From the sequence record ON529857.1: a stretch of 64,000 bases of DNA; one strand, given 5' to 3'. The position numbers and the translations under genes are program-made. Shown here piece after piece: positions 1,763 through 26,088 of this stretch. A model generated the notes under the pieces. That model was not told where the DNA came from, made no database searches, and saw nothing but the letters and a program-made list of their open reading frames with translations. Within the stretch, counting starts at the first letter, position 1. The number at the start of each line of letters is the position of its first letter.

Positions 1763-2698
1763 TTAGGCCTCGACGGTGAAAGACAGCTCCACCGGCGGAG
1801 ACGTGCGCGTGCGCGTTTCCGCCTTCAGGGTCACGATGAAATCGCCGCCCGAGAAACCCTTGCGGTAGAACGACAGTCTCTGGATGTTCTGATAGACATA
1901 GCCGTCGGTGGTTCCGTCGGTGATGTCGATCCCTTCCGCCGGATTCTCCAGGTGAACCTTTCCGGCCGCATCCGTGCGCAGCGTCAGGACCAGATCGGAT
2001 TCCGGCGCCTTGCCCGTCACCGTCAAGGTGATGGTATAGAGGTCCGTCAACACCTTGCCGGACGTCTTGTCGGTCAAGCCGATGCTGAAAGGGATGATCC
2101 AGTCCCGTCCCGCCGCCTGGGGCAGGGCGTAAACGCCTTCCACCGGCTGCACGACCGTCAGATCGTTTGGATAACGGGCCGCAGCCGCCAGCTCGATCTC
2201 GCCGTTGGTGGCCGTCGTCATCCCGCCGACCGGATTGCCGGAGCCGTGCGTCAGGTAGCCGTCCGGGGTCTTGAACGACGGCTCGACATCTTCGGCCGTC
2301 GTCGGCGCGGTCAACTCCGCAGCCGGGACGACCGCCGTCGTGAAGGTCGTTTCAACCGTCTCGCCACCATAGACGGCCTGGACCGTAAACGAAATCGGAC
2401 CAGGAGCATCCGCTTCCGTCCCGCCGGCGACGATGCGGGACCCCGCCAAAGCCAGCAGTCCTCCGGCCGCGTCCGTCAGCGAAAGCGACGCTTCAGGAAT
2501 CGAGACGTAGACCTCGCCCACGGGCGCGTCCATCGCCGAGCCGGCGACCAGGGTGCCACCGCTGTAGAAGAGTTGGAGAGGCAGGGCGCGGCCCTGGGCT
2601 CCGGCGCCCGACATGCCGCCCGTGATGCGGCGCGGAAGCGGATCGCCTGGGGAGCTCTTGACGCGAGCGAGGAGATTGATCTTGCGAGTGATAGCCAT
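1763..2698 (-). CDS. putative virion structural protein, beta-rich (Ig-like?)
   Basis: 311 aa, Thr/Val/Gly-rich, downstream of capsid genes. Confidence 0.6.
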   Translation of the reverse strand: MAITRKINLLARVKSSPGDPLPRRITGGMSGAGAQGRALPLQLFYSGGTLVAGSAMDAPVGEVYVSIPEASLSLTDAAGGLLALAGSRIVAGGTEADAPGPISFTVQAVYGGETVETTFTTAVVPAAELTAPTTAEDVEPSFKTPDGYLTHGSGNPVGGMTTATNGEIELAAAARYPNDLTVVQPVEGVYALPQAAGRDWIIPFSIGLTDKTSGKVLTDLYTITLTVTGKAPESDLVLTLRTDAAGKVHLENPAEGIDITDGTTDGYVYQNIQRLSFYRKGFSGGDFIVTLKAETRTRTSPPVELSFTVEA

Positions 2699-3315: not shown

Positions 3316-4251
3316 TTACGCGGTCACCGCCGCCTTCTTGATGCCCCAGACGCGAGCGGCGGCGCGGCCCGACAGCACCGCGAGGCTGATCAGCCACTCG
3401 ATGCGGGTGCGGTAAACCGGCTTGTCGTTGACCTGACCCAGGTCGTCGACTTCCATCACGCCGTTTTGCAGGCCGATGACGCCCGAGTCGCCCACGTTCA
3501 CGACGTAGATCGAGGTGCCAACGGGAGCGCCGCCACCGGGGCAGGCTTCGTTGAAGTCGATCACTTGCGTGTTCGTGTCGTCGTAGTCGGTGGTCAGGAT
3601 CGGCAGGTCGTTATAGAACGCGACGCGCGTTCCATATTCGTCCTTGTCCCAGGTGATGAAGCCGGCGACCGAAGTCTGGCGCGAAGCGGCCGACAGCAGG
3701 TTGCGCATGCGCTTCGACATGATCAGGTGCGTGGCGCCGTCGACAGCGTCGATGGCTTCGTCCAGCACTTGCAGCGACAGAGCGTCACCGCCAGCGGTGG
3801 CGCCGGCCGGGATCAGCTGATCGCCGACGATGCGCTTGCGCAGGCCGTCGAATTCACGCGGATCGGCTTCCGAGTCGCCGTTGATGATCTTGCCGGCCAG
3901 GAAGAGCGACAGGGCCTTGACCTTCATCTTTTCCTGCATGGTGCGGATGTTCGCGCCATGAGTACGGATGAGGGCCTTATCGACGTCCAGGTCGCCGCCG
4001 ACGATCTTCAGAACTTCGACTTGCGAGTTGATGACGCCGACGCCGTTCCCGTACGCTTCGTTGAAGCCACGGAAAGCCACGCCAGGCAGCTGACCTTCTT
4101 GGGTGTAGGTGTACGAACCACCCGGCACGTCCATGAAGGGGAGGACCTTCAGGAGGTCCGGATAAGCGAACAGCTCGATGATCGCCGAGCGCTTCACTTC
4201 GTCGTTGCCCATAGCCAGGTCAGAGGCTTCGAGCAGGGTCAAGGCAGCCAT
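3316..4251 (-). CDS. major capsid protein (HK97-fold)
   Basis: 311 aa; YTQEGQLPGVAFRGFNEAY, INGDSEADPREFDGLRKRI and YRTRIEWLISLAV patterns typical of this capsid family; follows scaffold. Confidence 0.85.
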   Translation of the reverse strand: MAALTLLEASDLAMGNDEVKRSAIIELFAYPDLLKVLPFMDVPGGSYTYTQEGQLPGVAFRGFNEAYGNGVGVINSQVEVLKIVGGDLDVDKALIRTHGANIRTMQEKMKVKALSLFLAGKIINGDSEADPREFDGLRKRIVGDQLIPAGATAGGDALSLQVLDEAIDAVDGATHLIMSKRMRNLLSAASRQTSVAGFITWDKDEYGTRVAFYNDLPILTTDYDDTNTQVIDFNEACPGGGAPVGTSIYVVNVGDSGVIGLQNGVMEVDDLGQVNDKPVYRTRIEWLISLAVLSGRAAARVWGIKKAAVTA

Positions 4252-4612: not shown

Positions 4613-5407
4613 TTACAGACGCGAAGCGCGATCGCCGTTCGCCAGGGCCAGCTTGTCGGCCGCCGACAGGTTGCGCATCTCGGCCTGGGTCTTGCCCAGA
4701 GCGCCGCGCTGCCCGCCGTCCGCACCGCCGCCAGCCGCGCCGCCGCCGTGAGTGCCCTTGAAGTAGTGAGGCGCTTCGTCCTTCAGCTTCAGAATCCACT
4801 CCTTGGGCGTCAGCGGCGAGCCGCCGTCAGCACCGTACAGTTGCAGATCGCCCTGGTAGGCCAGAACGCGACCATCATCGCCGGCGCGCCAGACTTCCGT
4901 CGCGCGGTGCAGGATGTCGCGGACGGCCGCCGGAGCGACGCCCAGTTCCGGGTCGATCAGAGCGTCCTTGATGGCGGTATTCACCAGGGTGCGCTTGTAA
5001 GTCGATTCCAGATCGGTGGCCTTGGTCTTCCAGTTGGCGCCTTCCTTCTGGGCGGCGCGAATCTGGTCCTCCAGGACCTTCTTCATATCTTCGGTCCGGC
5101 GGATCACTTCTTCTTCGATCCGGCGGCTGTCGGTCAGCTGACCATCCTTCACGCGCTGCGACGTCGCGCGCAGTTCAGTCAGGTCGTTGACAAAGGCGGT
5201 GGGGTCTTCGCCGACGATCGGCTCCAGCGTCTCCACCTTCTTCTTCAGCTCGTCGCGTTCCTTGACGAGCGTGATGTTGGTCTCGCGAAATTCGTCCAGT
5301 TTTTCCTGGGCGACGAGGTTGATTTGGACCTTGTCCCCATCAGCCTTGGCATAGCTGCGGAGCGGCTCCGGAATCTGATCCAGAGTGTCGAAAGTGCAAA
5401 TGGGCAT
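4613..5407 (-). CDS. capsid scaffolding protein
   Basis: Start MPICTF at 5407; coiled-coil, EAPHYFK then Gly-rich linker and short C-terminal helix; directly upstream of capsid gene. Confidence 0.75.
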   Translation of the reverse strand: MPICTFDTLDQIPEPLRSYAKADGDKVQINLVAQEKLDEFRETNITLVKERDELKKKVETLEPIVGEDPTAFVNDLTELRATSQRVKDGQLTDSRRIEEEVIRRTEDMKKVLEDQIRAAQKEGANWKTKATDLESTYKRTLVNTAIKDALIDPELGVAPAAVRDILHRATEVWRAGDDGRVLAYQGDLQLYGADGGSPLTPKEWILKLKDEAPHYFKGTHGGGAAGGGADGGQRGALGKTQAEMRNLSAADKLALANGDRASRL

Positions 5408-5524
5408 TACTGAGTTGTTTCTCTTGCGCCCTGGACCCCAGGGCATGGCGCTACGACCCGTGCGTCGCGAGATGATTTTACGGTGGGACCGGCTTCGGGG
5501 CCGTTCTCCTTCGGGATGACGCGG

Positions 5525-15552: not shown

Positions 15553-15975
15553 TTACAGGGTCAGGACGCGGACAGGGCCGCCGGAATAGATGTCGTACTC
15601 AAGCGCACAGTGCACCGCCTCGGACGCCGTAGCGCCGGCCGCCATGGCACCCAACGCGAGTTCACGGCCGGACCCCAGGGCGAAGTAGGGGCGATCCACG
15701 GTCAGGGAGCCGTATTCGCTGAACAACACCGCATGGCCCGAAGGCGCGATGATGAAGCCGGTGCTTTCGGCGCCGCTGGATTCCATCGGGCAGCGCCCGT
15801 GGGCGCCTTTGCGGACCCAGGCCATGAACGACACCACGGCCGCCCAGGTCCCAACGCCGCCGAACAGGACGCCGCGATGACTTTCGATCTTCACGGCGGA
15901 GCCTTCGCGGATGCCGTTCATCGTGACAAGGGAATCCGACGCCAGAACGCCGTCTCGATAAGCGATAGTGGTCAC
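15553..15975 (-). CDS. HslV/proteasome-beta-like N-terminal-threonine peptidase
   Basis: GTG at 15975 gives (M)TTIAY..GVLASDS; ALGSG and DIYSGG motifs of the Ntn-hydrolase family. Confidence 0.7.
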   Translation of the reverse strand: MTTIAYRDGVLASDSLVTMNGIREGSAVKIESHRGVLFGGVGTWAAVVSFMAWVRKGAHGRCPMESSGAESTGFIIAPSGHAVLFSEYGSLTVDRPYFALGSGRELALGAMAAGATASEAVHCALEYDIYSGGPVRVLTL

Positions 15976-17485: not shown

Positions 17486-18080
17486 TCGCGCTCTCCGTGT
17501 GCATCTCCAGAGCGGTCGAAGACCAGTGCGGCCGATGCAGCACTTCGCCGGAAGGCATTTTCGCAGGATCGGCGCGGGTCAGCGTGGTGACGTAGGTCAG
17601 GGCCTCCTCCAACGTGTCGAAAGGCTGCGCGGGGGAACCTTCGGCGGTCTTCCAGCCGGCGACCGAAAAAACATCGCGCATTTGGTGGTAGTTAGGGTTC
17701 ACCTGATGGTAGAAACGATGGCGGATAATCGAAGCGATCTTTTCTCCGTCGACATGGATGACGGCGAACGAAGACTGCGTTCTCGTGGCGGTGTTCTCGA
17801 TGTCGCGGTAAGCGTAGGCGAACGAAGCGTAAAACGCTTGCGCCTTATCAACATCAATGTTCGGGGCGGGTTCTTCACGGGGGGCCATCACGGCACGAGC
17901 GCATTGGGCCGCAGCATGAGCCGCCGCCGCCCGTCGGCGCGCGGTCTGAGCGGCGGTCTTCGCTGCGTCAGCCTGCTGAGCCAAAGCCGCGTACTGCCGC
18001 TGGAGCTCCGACGCTTTCTTCAGCTCTTCCTTCAGGATGTCATCGAGAAGGCGCAGGTTTCCAAGGTCGTTCTCACTCAT
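17478..18080 (-). CDS. hypothetical protein, N-terminal coiled coil
   Basis: 200 aa. Confidence 0.65.
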   Translation of the reverse strand: MSENDLGNLRLLDDILKEELKKASELQRQYAALAQQADAAKTAAQTARRRAAAAHAAAQCARAVMAPREEPAPNIDVDKAQAFYASFAYAYRDIENTATRTQSSFAVIHVDGEKIASIIRHRFYHQVNPNYHQMRDVFSVAGWKTAEGSPAQPFDTLEEALTYVTTLTRADPAKMPSGEVLHRPHWSSTALEMHTESANA

Positions 18081-18327
18081 AGTCGTGATCCGCCTTTGCA
18101 GTCGTCGTGAGGGTGATGGTCGGGTAGACCTTCACGGTTGGAGCGTCCGACGTCGCGACCATCAGCAGGCCGGCGATGCCGGTGCCGATCATGATGATCG
18201 CTTCGGCGTGCTCGGGTCGAATGACATAGCCGAGCAGGCCAGCCAGAGCGATCAGACCCAGCCAGGTCGACCGCTCCAGCGCCTTGGTGAGCAGGAAGGT
18301 GTAGAGGGCTTTCCAGTTCCAGGTCAT
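18073..18327 (-). CDS. holin-like two-TM membrane protein
   Basis: E.STW.GL..L..L.G..I.PE....I...G..IAG pattern of small phage holins. Confidence 0.5.
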   Translation of the reverse strand: MTWNWKALYTFLLTKALERSTWLGLIALAGLLGYVIRPEHAEAIIMIGTGIAGLLMVATSDAPTVKVYPTITLTTTAKADHDYE

Positions 18328-19025
18328 TTGGAGCTCCCAAGCGTATCTTCGACCATCTCATCGGCAATCCGACGGGTGTCTTCGTCCAGGAGGGCCGCGA
18401 CGGTCTGTTCGTCGGTGGTCATGGGCCGGGCGCCGTTCGCCAGCTTCAAGCGATCCGACGCGGACATCCGGCGAGCGGCGGCGACCGCCTGCGTATGCTC
18501 GGTGTCAGCCGGGCGCGCCGGCGCTTCGGGCGTTCCGGTCAGAACCCCGCGCAGCATGGCGGTCGCCTTGACCCGGCGCGCATCGGCCTCGTGGCGAAGC
18601 GTCGCCATCTTGGTGCGCACGCGGTTGAACTCCTCGCGGGTGTCTTCCCGCGACATCTCCAGCTTCACCGCGTCCGAGAGGTAGGTCATCGCGCGGGTGA
18701 TGATGTCTTCCGCTTCCTGGAAGGTGTAGACGCCGCCGGGGGCCGGTTGAATCGAAGCGCGCGACGCCGCCGCGATCTTCGCCTCCAGCTCCGCGATACG
18801 CTGATGCGCCTGCTCCAAGGCCGTCGGCGAGGCTTCCAGGAAATCAACCTGGTAGCGGCGCGTCAGGTCGGAGATCGCGCGCGATGCGCTGGGGGTGCCT
18901 TCCGGGACGGTCACATCATGGCCGGCGCCCGCCAGGGCTTGCGCCAGGACGGCGATGAGGGTGGTCTTGCCGCTGCCCTTGTCACCCGTGACGGTGACAG
19001 TGACGCGGGCGATGTTATCGGTCAT
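18324..19025 (-). CDS. hypothetical protein with N-terminal Walker A and scaffold-like C-terminal motif
   Basis: GDKGSGKT at N-terminus; MSASDRLKLANG near C-terminus. Confidence 0.65.
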   Translation of the reverse strand: MTDNIARVTVTVTGDKGSGKTTLIAVLAQALAGAGHDVTVPEGTPSASRAISDLTRRYQVDFLEASPTALEQAHQRIAELEAKIAAASRASIQPAPGGVYTFQEAEDIITRAMTYLSDAVKLEMSREDTREEFNRVRTKMATLRHEADARRVKATAMLRGVLTGTPEAPARPADTEHTQAVAAARRMSASDRLKLANGARPMTTDEQTVAALLDEDTRRIADEMVEDTLGSSK

Positions 19026-20512: not shown

Positions 20513-20623
20513 TCAGCACTTCTTGCGCTTCATGGGGAGAGGGGTCTTCGGAGACGCCGGCTTGGCCCTCTTGGGCTTCACCGGCTTGGCGAACGGCGTC
20601 GCGGTCAGGATGTCGATCGCCAT
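20513..20623 (-). CDS. small basic peptide
   Basis: ATG overlaps portal stop (TGATG); MAIDILTATPFAKPVKPKRAK..., 36 aa. Confidence 0.4.
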   Translation of the reverse strand: MAIDILTATPFAKPVKPKRAKPASPKTPLPMKRKKC

Positions 20624-22596
20624 CAGGCGGTATCCGTCCCGATACGCCGCGCCGGCGGCTGTTGCGGTGGCGCTTGCTTGGCCTTTGCGGCCGTTGCGGC
20701 GGACTTGCGCTGAATCGCCAGCTGCTGCTGCTCCGCCTGGGTCGGCGGGGCCTGCTCCGGATCGCCCAGCTTGCGAGAAGCCGACACGGTCGTGGAGCCG
20801 AACTGCTGCGCCAGGGCGAACTTCTCTTCTTCCAACGCGCGGGCGCGCTCTTGCAACTCCAGCTCCTTGGCCTGGAAAGTCGCCTCGCGCGCCAGGCGCA
20901 CCTGCTCCAGCTCCTGAGCCCGGCTGACGTAACCGCGACGCATCGCTTCGGCGTCGGGTTTGCCGATGAAGGAATTGGGGTCTTCCATCTTGGTGCGGAA
21001 GTCTTCCAGGGTCATGGTCGTGGAGATCACCCCGTTGCGCACCATGGCTTCGTAGAAGACGTCGATCGGAATGTCGCCCTCCTTGAACAGCTGCTGGATC
21101 GCGCGGATCGCGCGTGCGTCCAGGGTGGTCGACAGGAAGGTGGTGTCCAGCTCGTAACGCAGCAGGGCGGTGTCTTGCAGCGGCACGTCGCGGAACAGCA
21201 GCCAATATCGCATCAAGGTCGTCATGCCCTCTTCCAGGGCGGTGATGACATTGAGCAGCAGGCTCTGTTCGTTCGCTTCGCGGATCGATGACTGCTGGTT
21301 GGATTCCGACGTCGACTTCGACGAGCCGGGCATCATGCGACCGCCGATCGCGGCGATCTGCTGCTCCTTCTCGTCCAAGGCGCGCTCCAGGGTCTTGAGA
21401 CCCTCGCCCTTGAACTCCAGGATGCCGGGGATGCCGTCCGGGGTGGTTTCCCACACCGTGCCGGGGCCGATGTGATAGTTGGCCGAATCCGAATCCGAGG
21501 TGCCCGGCACATAGTAGGTCGGCAGGGCGGTGTAGAAGCGACCGTATTCCAGCTCCGCATAGGTGCGGTAGTGCTTCAGATTCAGGTCGACGATGTCGAG
21601 AAGCGGCGGCTTTTCGCAGTCCGCCGCATTGGAGAAGGCGCCGAAGAAGACGACCGGCAGGAATCTCAGCGGATTGCCGCGCACCTTCGGGTAGGTGACC
21701 TTGACCGGCTTGCTCAGCGGGTCTTCCTTGTAGACCTTCTGGCAGTAGACGCGCGATCCGTCTTCCTGGACCTCCAGGACCAGCTCGCGATACTGGGTGA
21801 CGTAGGTGTAGCCGCCCGTCGCCGGCTGTTCGGCCGGGGTGCGGGACGTCACCGGCATCAGCTCGCCGTCGGCGGTGCGGATCATCGCCGTTTGCGGGCG
21901 CTTGCGGCGGCCGCGCGCCGGCTTTTCTTCGCCGATCCAGGGATTGTCGGCGCTGGCGCCCGGCGCCACGCGCACGAACTCGCGCAGCAGAACGCGGGTC
22001 GGGACATAGAAGCCCTCGACCTCTTCGATCTGCCAGTCGATGATGTTCTCGGCCGTATAGCCGACGACGTAGGGCTGCGGCTTCTTACCGACCGGCGTTT
22101 CGTCAACATCCGCCAAGGCCAGGAAGCGGCCCATGGCGATCTGCTCGGCGGCGATCGTCTTGGCGAAGGAAGCGTGGCTGGTGCCGTCTTTGGCGAACCG
22201 CGCCAGCGCCGGCAGGAGCTTCTCACCCTGGTCGATCACCACCTCCGCGCCGCCGGCGTCGCGGGAGACGACGCGACCGGGCTGCGGCAGGTGACGAATG
22301 ACAGGAGGGCGGCGGAAAACCTGCCCGACCATGCCGGACAGCGTCTGAGACGCCATGTTGTAGAACACCGCCCGATGCAGATACTGCTCGTACTGATCGT
22401 CGGTCGACCCTTCCATCGGGCGCAGGTAGACCGCACCCTTACGCTTGATCTCGCGCTCGCCCGCGAGCGCGTCCCTGATCTTCTGCCAATCCTCAGCCCA
22501 GTAGCTGTATTCCGGGTGAGCGACGATCGAGCTGAAAGCCGCGATTGCGCGTTTCGTCCGGCCGATATTGGTGGAATTGGGTGTGGTGCCGGCCAT
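20623..22596 (-). CDS. portal protein (DUF4055-type)
   Basis: HPEY..W...W..IRDAL.GE..IK, RAVFYN, PPLLDIVDLNLKHY..YAELEYG motifs; likely start MAGTTPN at 22596. Confidence 0.9.
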   Translation of the reverse strand: MAGTTPNSTNIGRTKRAIAAFSSIVAHPEYSYWAEDWQKIRDALAGEREIKRKGAVYLRPMEGSTDDQYEQYLHRAVFYNMASQTLSGMVGQVFRRPPVIRHLPQPGRVVSRDAGGAEVVIDQGEKLLPALARFAKDGTSHASFAKTIAAEQIAMGRFLALADVDETPVGKKPQPYVVGYTAENIIDWQIEEVEGFYVPTRVLLREFVRVAPGASADNPWIGEEKPARGRRKRPQTAMIRTADGELMPVTSRTPAEQPATGGYTYVTQYRELVLEVQEDGSRVYCQKVYKEDPLSKPVKVTYPKVRGNPLRFLPVVFFGAFSNAADCEKPPLLDIVDLNLKHYRTYAELEYGRFYTALPTYYVPGTSDSDSANYHIGPGTVWETTPDGIPGILEFKGEGLKTLERALDEKEQQIAAIGGRMMPGSSKSTSESNQQSSIREANEQSLLLNVITALEEGMTTLMRYWLLFRDVPLQDTALLRYELDTTFLSTTLDARAIRAIQQLFKEGDIPIDVFYEAMVRNGVISTTMTLEDFRTKMEDPNSFIGKPDAEAMRRGYVSRAQELEQVRLAREATFQAKELELQERARALEEEKFALAQQFGSTTVSASRKLGDPEQAPPTQAEQQQLAIQRKSAATAAKAKQAPPQQPPARRIGTDTA

Positions 22597-22804
22597 GAGG
22601 AGCAGAAAAAGGCGAGGGCCGAAGGATTCGGCCCTCAAAGGCGTAGAACGAAGTTCGAGTTAGGCTTTTAAGCCTTACTCTGCCAGGATTACTGTCATGA
22701 AAGGGGTTGATTGTCAAGAAAAACGGCGTTTGAGGGTGATTCGGAGTCCCTGTTACGGCGATTTTCACGATTTTCGCGTTGACAGCCGGTTTTCGCTACC
22801 TTAA

Positions 22805-22983
22805 ACCTCAGGTTCACCCAAGGAAGGCCGAGGCTTTCTCGACAACCCGTAACCCGGAGGCGATCATGAAGTGAAACTCAGCGTCCCCGTCGTCTACGGG
22901 GCCGGCGGACGGGTGAAACCCAGACATTCGGACGTCGCGTTCACAAACGATCAAGGCCCTGTCGTCGACAGGGCCTTTTTTCA
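22805..22983 (+). ncRNA. candidate small structured RNA between protease and portal
   Basis: GGTTCACCC/GGGTGAAACC long-range stem, CCCCGT/ACGGGG hairpin, strong +-strand terminator. Confidence 0.4.
22953..22982 (+). terminator. intrinsic terminator, + strand
   Basis: AGGCCCTGTC-GTC-GACAGGGCCT followed by a T run. Confidence 0.75.
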
Positions 22984-22985
22984 CA

Positions 22986-23702
22986 TCACCAGCTGGGGTC
23001 TTCGCCGCACAACGGCGTTTGGGACAGATCGCGCACGCCGCCGCGTCCAGGACCGCCGACATTGATCACCCCGACGACGCGTCCCGCGCCGTCCAGGACC
23101 GGACCGCCCGACATTCCCGAATGGGCTTCGCCGCTCATGATCGCCTGGTGCAGCGCCGGTTGGGAGGCGTTGCGCAAGGGCATGTCAGCGTAGACGCCCG
23201 TAAAGGTGAAGCGCTGGAGGGCGAAGTCCCGGCCATAGGCCCAGCCAACACCGAGATATTCCCGACCACGCCGCAGCCCGCCGCAATGCAGCTCCAGCTG
23301 CGCCGGTGTCGGCAGAGGCACCGCCAGGACCGCAAGGTCCAGCGCCCGGTCGAAATGGAGCGGGGTCATGGGCTTGTCCTGGAACACGCACTGGGCGGCG
23401 CCCTCCACGACGTGCGCCGCCGTCAGGACGCGCCCCGGCCCGATCACCGATCCGGTTCCGGTCACAACGCGCACCTGCAAGCGTTGAAGCACTGTCAACG
23501 ACGAAAGCGGCGTATCCGGCGGCACGCCTTCCGGCAAAACCAGGCACAGGATCATCCCGGTGCTGTTGAGGTTGACGAAGTAGGGTCCAGAGGCGCGACC
23601 GACCAAGCCCATGGGTTCCGCCTGGACGGGCGGCGCCGACAATGACGTCGGAAACGTCAGGCACAGCAAGAAGGCCGTAAAGGCGGCGGCGAGACGACGC
23701 AT
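22986..23702 (-). CDS. trypsin-like (S1) serine protease with signal peptide
   Basis: TAAHV (His), LDLAVL (Asp), GMSGGP (Ser); hydrophobic N-terminus MRRLAAAFTAFLLCL. Confidence 0.85.
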   Translation of the reverse strand: MRRLAAAFTAFLLCLTFPTSLSAPPVQAEPMGLVGRASGPYFVNLNSTGMILCLVLPEGVPPDTPLSSLTVLQRLQVRVVTGTGSVIGPGRVLTAAHVVEGAAQCVFQDKPMTPLHFDRALDLAVLAVPLPTPAQLELHCGGLRRGREYLGVGWAYGRDFALQRFTFTGVYADMPLRNASQPALHQAIMSGEAHSGMSGGPVLDGAGRVVGVINVGGPGRGGVRDLSQTPLCGEDPSW

Positions 23703-25173: not shown

Positions 25174-26088
25174 TCAGGCGGCCAGCGCCAGCGCCTCGGC
25201 GGCCTCGCCTTGCGGCTCTTGCGCGGCGTCAGCCTCGGCGGCTTTCAGGATGTAATCCGCCGCCGTCTGGGCCTTCGTGCAAGCCTGAATAAACGCCTTC
25301 GGGTTGGAGCGGATGCGGGCCGCCCAATGGCCGATATAGGCGGCGTGGTCGTCGCGCTCGACACTGGCGAAGCCTTGCGAGGCGCAGACAAACGCCGCCG
25401 TCAGTTCCGCGACCAGTTCCTCAAAGGCGTAAGCCTCATCGCCGAATTCACGGCCAAAGGTGCGGTTAAGGCGATGCTCCGCGCCGGTCCAATGCCCCAG
25501 CTCATGAAAGGCCGTCGAATAATAGCCGTCCGCGTTGATGAAGTCGGCGAAGGCGGGCAGGTGGATGCGGTCGAAAGTCGGGGTATAGAACGCCTTAGAC
25601 CCGCCGTGGCGGACTTCCGCGCCCGTGGCGACGATCAGGGCGTCAGCGGCGGCGATGCGCTCCGCTTCGGGCAGGATCGAAGCCGGGGCGGCTTCGGGCA
25701 GTTCCACGCCCTCGCATTGCGCGATGTTGAACACGGTGTAGACCTTGGCGAAGAATCGCGAGGTCGTCTCGCCCGTCGCGGCGTCTTCCTTCGTGGTGCG
25801 CGACCAGAAAAAGACCGGCGTTCCCTTCTCGCCCTTGCGAACCGAACCGCCGCGCGCCTTGGCCTGTTTGAACGTCATCCAGACGGGTTCCGCGTAACCC
25901 TTGGCCTCTTGCTCCATCCACAGCCAAAAGGTGTTGGCGCCGCGATAGGCGCGGCCTTCGATGTTGCGGGGCAGGGCCAGGGCCGAACCGCGCGCGGTCC
26001 AAGGCTTCGACCAAGGGCGAACGCCCGATTCCAGTTTACCGGCAATCGTGGCGGCGATCTTGTCAAACACTTCGTTAGCTTGTGCCAT
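25174..26088 (-). CDS. ardC: ArdC-family antirestriction / ssDNA-binding protein with zincin-like domain
   Basis: GVRPWSKPW, YRGAN, WMTFKQA, VRKGEKG, VFNIAQCEG, FHELGHWTG, EELVAEL motifs. Confidence 0.92.
   Translation of the reverse strand: MAQANEVFDKIAATIAGKLESGVRPWSKPWTARGSALALPRNIEGRAYRGANTFWLWMEQEAKGYAEPVWMTFKQAKARGGSVRKGEKGTPVFFWSRTTKEDAATGETTSRFFAKVYTVFNIAQCEGVELPEAAPASILPEAERIAAADALIVATGAEVRHGGSKAFYTPTFDRIHLPAFADFINADGYYSTAFHELGHWTGAEHRLNRTFGREFGDEAYAFEELVAELTAAFVCASQGFASVERDDHAAYIGHWAARIRSNPKAFIQACTKAQTAADYILKAAEADAAQEPQGEAAEALALAA

Follow-up and report, generated by a model that had tools for sequence, protein, structure and literature searches.

The stretch of DNA analysed here (hereafter the window, 64,000 nucleotides) comprises bases 248001-312000 of the genome of Brevundimonas phage vB_BpoS-Kikimora (ON529857.1, 312,615 bp), a jumbo (giant) siphophage with a prolate head, as in other phiCbK-like phages (Dolichocephalovirinae). 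The head genes of the window include, on the same strand, those for the portal, scaffolding and major capsid proteins, together with a gene of an unnamed, portal-adjacent family that is found in phiCbK-like phages and is denoted here the accessory family. The features relevant to this analysis are listed below, in window coordinates, with the evidence for each in parentheses.

18324..19025, minus strand: accessory gene KIKIMORA_04420, 233 aa (ORF, annotation, 8 close homologues, 38 family representatives)
18831..19025, minus strand: N-terminal mini-domain of the accessory protein, residues 1-65 (family alignments, AF2)
18963..18986, minus strand: Walker A loop G-x4-G-K-T, residues 14-21 (sequence)
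18537..18722, minus strand: predicted long helix or coiled coil, residues 102-163 (AF2 model)
18432..18473, minus strand: internal copy of the putative docking helix of the scaffold, accessory residues 185-198 (BLASTP, BLOSUM62 scan, profile comparison, AF2)
4613..5407, minus strand: head scaffolding protein gene, 264 aa (phrog_206, E 6e-36; annotated start; homologue alignment)
4634..4675, minus strand: C-terminal putative docking helix motif of the scaffold, residues 245-258, followed by six terminal residues (sequence, conservation)
4685..4753, minus strand: Gly-rich, probably flexible linker of the scaffold, N-terminal to the putative docking helix (sequence; G-G-G block invariant in homologues)
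3316..4251, minus strand: major capsid protein, 311 aa, HK97 fold of the epsilon15 gp7 / BPP-1 type (phrog_212, E 1e-83; PF20911)
20623..22596, minus strand: portal protein gene, DUF4055 (annotation)

The major capsid protein, which is the presumed partner of the docking helix by analogy with other phages, has relatives in the PDB (8cjz, 3j4u, 3j40), and its gene is followed by that of a Bbp16-like cement protein. The scaffold gene is labelled 'hypothetical' in GenBank, and we found no solved structural relatives of its product. The original prediction placed the scaffold start at 5446, for a product of 277 aa; the annotated start, shared by all homologues, is at 5407 (M-P-I) and yields 264 aa; because the ORF start was used instead, the scaffold residue numbers given there were 13 too high.

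In Kikimora, the accessory gene is located 1.6 kb downstream of the portal gene on the same strand, and at both its start and its stop it abuts or overlaps the adjacent gene. No strong terminator was found between the portal and accessory genes in this genome, so that the two are probably co-transcribed. The same order, with several small ORFs in between, is seen in Domovoi, CcrColossus and four metagenomic contigs, and the distance from the portal gene ranges from 1.3 to ~3 kb in seven phages and contigs. The scaffold and capsid genes lie 8-14 kb beyond the accessory gene, again on the same strand.

A motif common to the accessory protein and the scaffold

BLASTP aligns the accessory protein with the scaffold over the motif only (11/19 residues identical, pairwise E 0.001). 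The pattern common to the two is [LM]-S-A-x-D-[KR]-L-x-L-A-N-G, and it is located where the original prediction had placed it, at residues 185-198 of the accessory protein and residues 245-258 of the 264-residue scaffold. When the scaffold 14-mer was compared, using BLOSUM62, with all six-frame ORFs of the 312,615-bp genome (402,163 windows), the accessory protein scored 47 and the runner-up window 34. None of 200,000 shuffled versions of the accessory protein reached 47 (the maximum was 43), and a Gumbel fit gives p ~1.3e-5 per protein, or ~0.007 over roughly 500 genes. The back-translated DNA pattern occurs at exactly two sites in each of the whole genomes of Kikimora, Gurke, Domovoi and Bambus and at one site in CcrColossus; the reversed control pattern has zero sites in these genomes. 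A motif HMM scores the two Kikimora copies at 34.3 and 30.4, and the next match at 7.9. The genome scan for further copies that was proposed along with the original prediction thus recovers only these two in Kikimora, with no third tagged protein detected by the whole-genome pattern, 14-mer or HMM scans. For CcrColossus and two large IMG/VR relatives, the genome-wide pattern returns the scaffold copy only, or no copy with the pattern used. The predicted close resemblance of the accessory peptide to the scaffold C-terminus is confirmed by BLASTP, the genome-wide scan, the shuffles and the conservation described below. Collectively, these results support the conclusion that the match is not due to chance and that purifying selection maintains the motif in both families.

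The similarity does not extend beyond the motif. Comparison of the accessory and scaffold profiles with hhalign yields a motif-to-motif alignment only (20 columns, E 2.7e-4); with the distant accessory subgroup, the motif is again the top match and its register is unchanged, but the E of 0.14 is not significant. A search of the accessory protein for the scaffold body found no PHROG or Pfam scaffold match (phrog_206 / PF06810). We therefore rejected the possibility that the accessory protein is a scaffold paralogue, given that both BLASTP and hhalign show only the motif (~20 columns). Recent gene conversion from the scaffold gene was rejected as well: the DNA identity amounts to ~25 nt of preferred codons with unrelated flanks, the accessory and scaffold copies of Domovoi differ in the serine codon family, and the motif is old within the accessory family.

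Conservation and architecture of the two proteins

The scaffold motif is kept from the Brevundimonas phages via CcrColossus to phiCbK (44% identity) and in metagenomic relatives, fading only in remote relatives. It always follows a Gly-rich linker and is located 6-8 residues from the C-terminus. These sequence features support a docking-peptide anatomy of the scaffold tail, with a Gly-rich linker, a capped, amphipathic helix of ~10 residues and a few terminal residues. Within the motif, both families vary most at positions 1 and 5; conservation of positions 9 and 10 is confined to the scaffolds. The Ala at position 4, which the extraction pattern left free, is well kept in scaffold and accessory families alike; the low entropy at positions 6-8 and 11-12 is partly by construction because the pattern fixed them.

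Across eight accessory homologues, down to 39% identity, A-A-R ... L-x-L-A-N-G is invariant, and the flanks and length are variable. A profile search of 1.84 billion representatives returned 38 accessory-family matches, each representing a 50% cluster, and a 17-sequence alignment spans them. The full motif is present in 16 of these 38, and a distant subgroup carries A-x-D-[KR]-L-x-x-A-N at 6-31 residues before the C-terminus. In the 17-sequence alignment, the only invariant columns beyond the N-terminal domain are the L, A and N of the motif. Both the sequence and the length of the region between the N-terminal domain and the motif vary among homologues, as does the length of the segment that precedes the conserved mid-region. 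The motif is followed by 33 residues in the Kikimora protein and by 30-89 in the full-motif homologues, and the accessory copy lacks the conserved terminal [RKS]-L residues of the scaffold.

For three metagenomic phages, we recovered the scaffold and accessory genes of the same phage by walking along the contigs. In all three pairs, a canonical scaffold motif is accompanied by an accessory motif of the drifted form A-x-D-[KR]-L-x-x-A-N-L. Tight co-variation of the two motifs is thus not seen in these pairs, which weakens the case for one identical binding site, even though the core is common to both. Two further features were noticed in the distant subgroup: many of its members (P0018, P0020-P0022, P0024, P0027, P0029; L059:4282-4971) end in a conserved C-terminal Gly-Cys, and the second half of the motif is tandemly duplicated in P0023.

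The AF2 model of the Kikimora accessory protein, built from 39 sequences, has a mean pLDDT of 85, with values of 86-91 at residues 11-40 that drop to 71-77 at residues 51-70, and contains no predicted beta-strands. Helices are predicted at residues 69-91 and 102-163, followed by a Pro/Ala-rich linker, a confident helix-turn-helix (residues 172-186 and 189-196) and a last helix at residues 204-230. The second helix of the helix-turn-helix is the motif; it is amphipathic, with an S-x-x-D box as the N-cap and N-G as the C-cap. Fold searches (PDB Foldseek, BFVD and a wide VIA search) matched generic coiled coils only, and a search of the ESM Atlas gave no match above chance. As judged from the alignments and the model, the family architecture appears to consist of a Walker A mini-domain, a coiled coil of variable length and a capped helix.

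Conservation within the family is highest in the mini-domain (residues 1-65), where the invariant residues include G19, K20, L23, L31, H36, L54 and E64. A Walker A sequence (G-x4-G-K-[ST]) spans residues 14-21, and 39 family members all retain G19 and K20. The arrangement is reminiscent of ParA/MinD-type P-loop NTPases in that the Walker A loop is followed by a predicted helix and then by a short hydrophobic, strand-like segment, and in that the invariant E64 comes after the second hydrophobic segment. When this site was checked as a possible Walker B, E64 was found to follow V-x-F-x, with a non-acidic residue immediately before it and no strand predicted there. Unlike P-loop NTPases, the domain is only ~65 residues long and shows no sign, in the AF2 model, of the five-stranded sheet of the full alpha/beta core. 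No Pfam family scores above its cut-off (the best, AAA_16, reaches 26.4 bits against a cut-off of 32.6), and the sub-threshold matches are spread over 35 P-loop families. The description of the protein as P-loop-bearing (GDKGSGKT) holds for the Walker A loop; a full NTPase fold, with its beta-sheet core, is not predicted. On this evidence from sequence and model, the protein is not a demonstrable NTPase, despite its GenBank label, 'P-loop containing nucleoside triphosphate hydrolase'.

CcrColossus and CcrPW encode a short version that retains the N-terminal domain and lacks the motif. Neither phiCbK nor a complete 279-kb relative from IMG/VR has a family member; head assembly as such therefore does not require the protein. 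Scans of IMG/VR and two metagenomes with the accessory family yielded no usable relatives, and one candidate (L055) was rejected as an unrelated P-loop protein. The accessory protein is 233-238 aa long in phages with genomes of 312-321 kb vs 304-317 aa in those with genomes of 348-357 kb, and most of the difference lies in the coiled coil and the tail (18324-19025 vs L002:22373-23317 and L004:20844-21758). This relation between protein length and genome size may be a coincidence because only two lineages are involved.

Candidate role of the accessory helix

A close parallel to this arrangement is provided by the staphylococcal phage 80alpha and the satellite SaPI1. The 'helix-and-hook' element of the 80alpha scaffold, whose anatomy the Kikimora scaffold tail resembles, binds the N-arm of the capsid protein, and CpmB of SaPI1, like the scaffold a helical or coiled-coil dimer but not otherwise related to it, has the same element and makes the same contacts (PMC5644958). 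As in that pair, a non-scaffold protein appears to carry the short amphipathic helix found at the C-terminus of its cognate scaffold, the two proteins being otherwise unrelated and helical or coiled-coil. There are also differences. CpmB is encoded by a hijacking satellite, whereas the Kikimora genome itself encodes both the scaffold and the accessory protein; the CpmB motif, with its 'hook' (RIIK), forms the very C-terminus of the protein, whereas the accessory copy is internal and lacks the terminal residues; the two motifs are unrelated in sequence; and capsid binding, shown for CpmB, is what we infer for the accessory protein.

In phage P22, the scaffold is a flexible helical protein whose C-terminal helix-turn-helix is required for capsid assembly and has been named the coat-binding domain in a review (PMC9962691). 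The accessory motif is likewise predicted to form the second helix of a helix-turn-helix. The P22 element suffices to carry fused cargo into procapsids; those fusions were engineered, however, the sequences are not similar, and the coat protein of P22 differs in its insertion-domain architecture. Sharing of the capsid-binding end of the scaffold between two head-assembly proteins also has a precedent in lambda C/Nu3 and P2 gpO, where the protease and scaffold genes are nested and the products have a common C-terminus. By analogy, the accessory protein could be such a second protein; in lambda and P2, however, the shared end is the same DNA in the same frame, whereas in Kikimora the two genes are 13.7 kb apart and have ~14 residues in common. 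The internal proteins of T4 enter the head by means of a capsid targeting sequence, an N-terminal targeting peptide (PMC3012670). There, too, one short conserved peptide is common to diverse non-structural proteins and brings them into the prohead, but the T4 peptide is N-terminal, is aimed at the scaffolding core rather than mimicking the scaffold tail, and is removed by the prohead protease; the accessory motif is C-proximal (residues 185-198). Thus, sharing of the capsid-binding end of a scaffold is already known from a satellite (CpmB), from nested genes and from P22 engineering. For a separate phage gene with an internal, family-conserved copy of the scaffold helix, we found no precedent among the open-access papers retrieved.

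Because the helix is kept across the accessory family, it probably docks on the partner of the scaffold while the head is being assembled. We tentatively propose, with a confidence that falls a little short of even, that the accessory helix binds the site of the C-terminal helix of the scaffold, probably on the capsid protein in proheads, and thereby either recruits the accessory protein or competes with the scaffold. By analogy with P22, HSV and 80alpha, this site would lie on the major capsid protein of the prohead, at its inner face or N-arm. Through occupation of the site by its helix, the accessory protein, with its coiled coil and Walker A loop, would be carried into or onto the assembling heads and tethered there as a minor internal or assembly protein, which would then necessarily compete with the scaffold for sites. 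The partner, the entry into proheads and any dependence on a nucleotide are what we infer in this scheme. The non-chance match, the docking-peptide anatomy and the location in the head region agree with the capsid-targeting role that was originally predicted. The notion of the same helix is right; that of the same tag is not established because the copy is internal and lacks the terminal residues of the scaffold. In the scaffold, the terminal [RKS]-L may form part of the docking element, by analogy with the 80alpha 'hook'. A search for virion or prohead proteomes of the Brevundimonas phages returned none; that of phiCbK virions lists eight proteins (PMC3556154) and is uninformative in this respect because phiCbK lacks the accessory family.

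The proposal of a common site on the capsid protein has to be weighed against the generic character of part of the motif, namely, the N-cap and C-cap portions, which are ordinary helix signals. The helix could therefore be simply a self-contained capped helix that originated independently in the two families, without any shared partner, and serves folding or self-association in the accessory protein. Such an origin would fit the restriction of the homology to ~20 columns with no extended DNA identity, the different serine codon families in Domovoi, and the drift of the accessory motif against the fixed scaffold motif. It would not, however, account for the positions that have no role in capping (A, [KR]-L, x-x-A) and are nevertheless common to, and conserved in, both families, or for a match that is an outlier in the whole genome. 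Given also that the motif is the sole invariant element of the accessory family beyond the N-terminal domain and that both genes belong to the head-gene region, we consider this explanation unlikely. About the same low probability attaches to the possibility that the helix is indeed the same and the shared partner is not the capsid protein but the portal, a host chaperone or one of the peptidases of the head region, for which the helix would be a docking or degradation signal. As a rule, scaffolds leave the head or are removed by proteolysis, and those of several phages recruit the portal as well. The accessory gene is always within a few kb downstream of the portal gene, with which it is probably co-transcribed, and two peptidase genes are present in the same region (15553-15975, HslV-like, and 22986-23702, trypsin-like). 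Against such partners, in the solved or genetically dissected cases considered (80alpha and P22), it is with the helix at its very C-terminus that the scaffold binds the capsid protein, and nothing in the present analysis links the motif to the portal or a peptidase.

A narrower variant of the shared-site proposal is that the accessory protein adjusts how long the prolate head becomes, acting like CpmB as a competing, second scaffold inside the head, with the coiled coil as a spacer. In addition to the precedent of CpmB itself, this variant could draw on the prediction that the protein is mostly a long helix, similarly to a scaffold, and on its greater length in the phages with larger genomes (304-317 vs 233-238 aa). 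We nevertheless regard a length regulator as very improbable: the length relation comes from two lineages only, equally long-headed relatives lack the motif or the protein (the head of CcrColossus measures 292 nm), and, as a special case of the shared-site reading, it needs the same putative binding. Taken further, the idea of a common docking site leads to a natural 'scaffold-tail mimic' by which giant prolate-headed phages would load a nucleotide-binding coiled-coil protein into the prohead, or position it there, as an ATP-dependent assembly regulator, for instance, of the timing of scaffold release or of head length, with the coiled coil tuned to genome size. This is a long shot; if true, the mimic would be a phage-encoded counterpart of both the satellite trick exemplified by CpmB and encapsulin cargo loading.

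A conserved accessory protein with the putative docking helix of the scaffold offers a concrete and testable way into the question of how phiCbK-like giant phages assemble and measure their very long prolate heads. Should the helix dock on the capsid protein as proposed, a phage, and not a satellite, would be mimicking its own scaffold by means of a natural short motif, and the capped helix of ~14 residues is a candidate tag for encapsidation in capsids of this type. If it does not bind the capsid protein, the finding reduces to an unnamed family of helical proteins with a Walker A loop.

Other genes and signals of the head region

Several additional features were noted in the neighbourhood of the genes discussed above. 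The accessory stop codon overlaps (ATGA) a small gene, 18073-18327(-), whose 84-aa product has two hydrophobic, membrane-like segments; this gene is present in Gurke and absent from the corresponding site of Domovoi and Bambus. Two terminator-like hairpins of 11 pairs each (22613-22637 and 22953-22977, both on the minus strand) are located upstream of the portal gene. Two strong hairpins at this location make a transcription-unit boundary likely. In the scanned region as a whole, 26 terminator-like sites were detected vs 14.6 in shuffled controls.

Neither of the two peptidase genes, the HslV-like one (minus strand, phrog_1040) and the trypsin-like one (minus strand, just upstream of the portal gene), belongs to a classical prohead protease family. 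A 311-aa ORF at 1763-2698(-), downstream of the cement-like protein, equals the capsid protein in length and has no PHROG match. CcrColossus encodes a second 'major head protein', gp036 (L005:1-461), next to a peptidase, on the opposite strand and upstream of the portal; this gene is additional to the capsid gene that lies beside the scaffold.

Finally, the gene at 25174-26088(-), labelled 'DNA primase TraC', matches the anti-restriction protein family phrog_7245 (E 1e-85), and a metagenomic homologue contains ArdC-N and MPTase-PolyVal domains. From these sequence matches, the product is more likely to be an ArdC-like anti-restriction protein than a primase.
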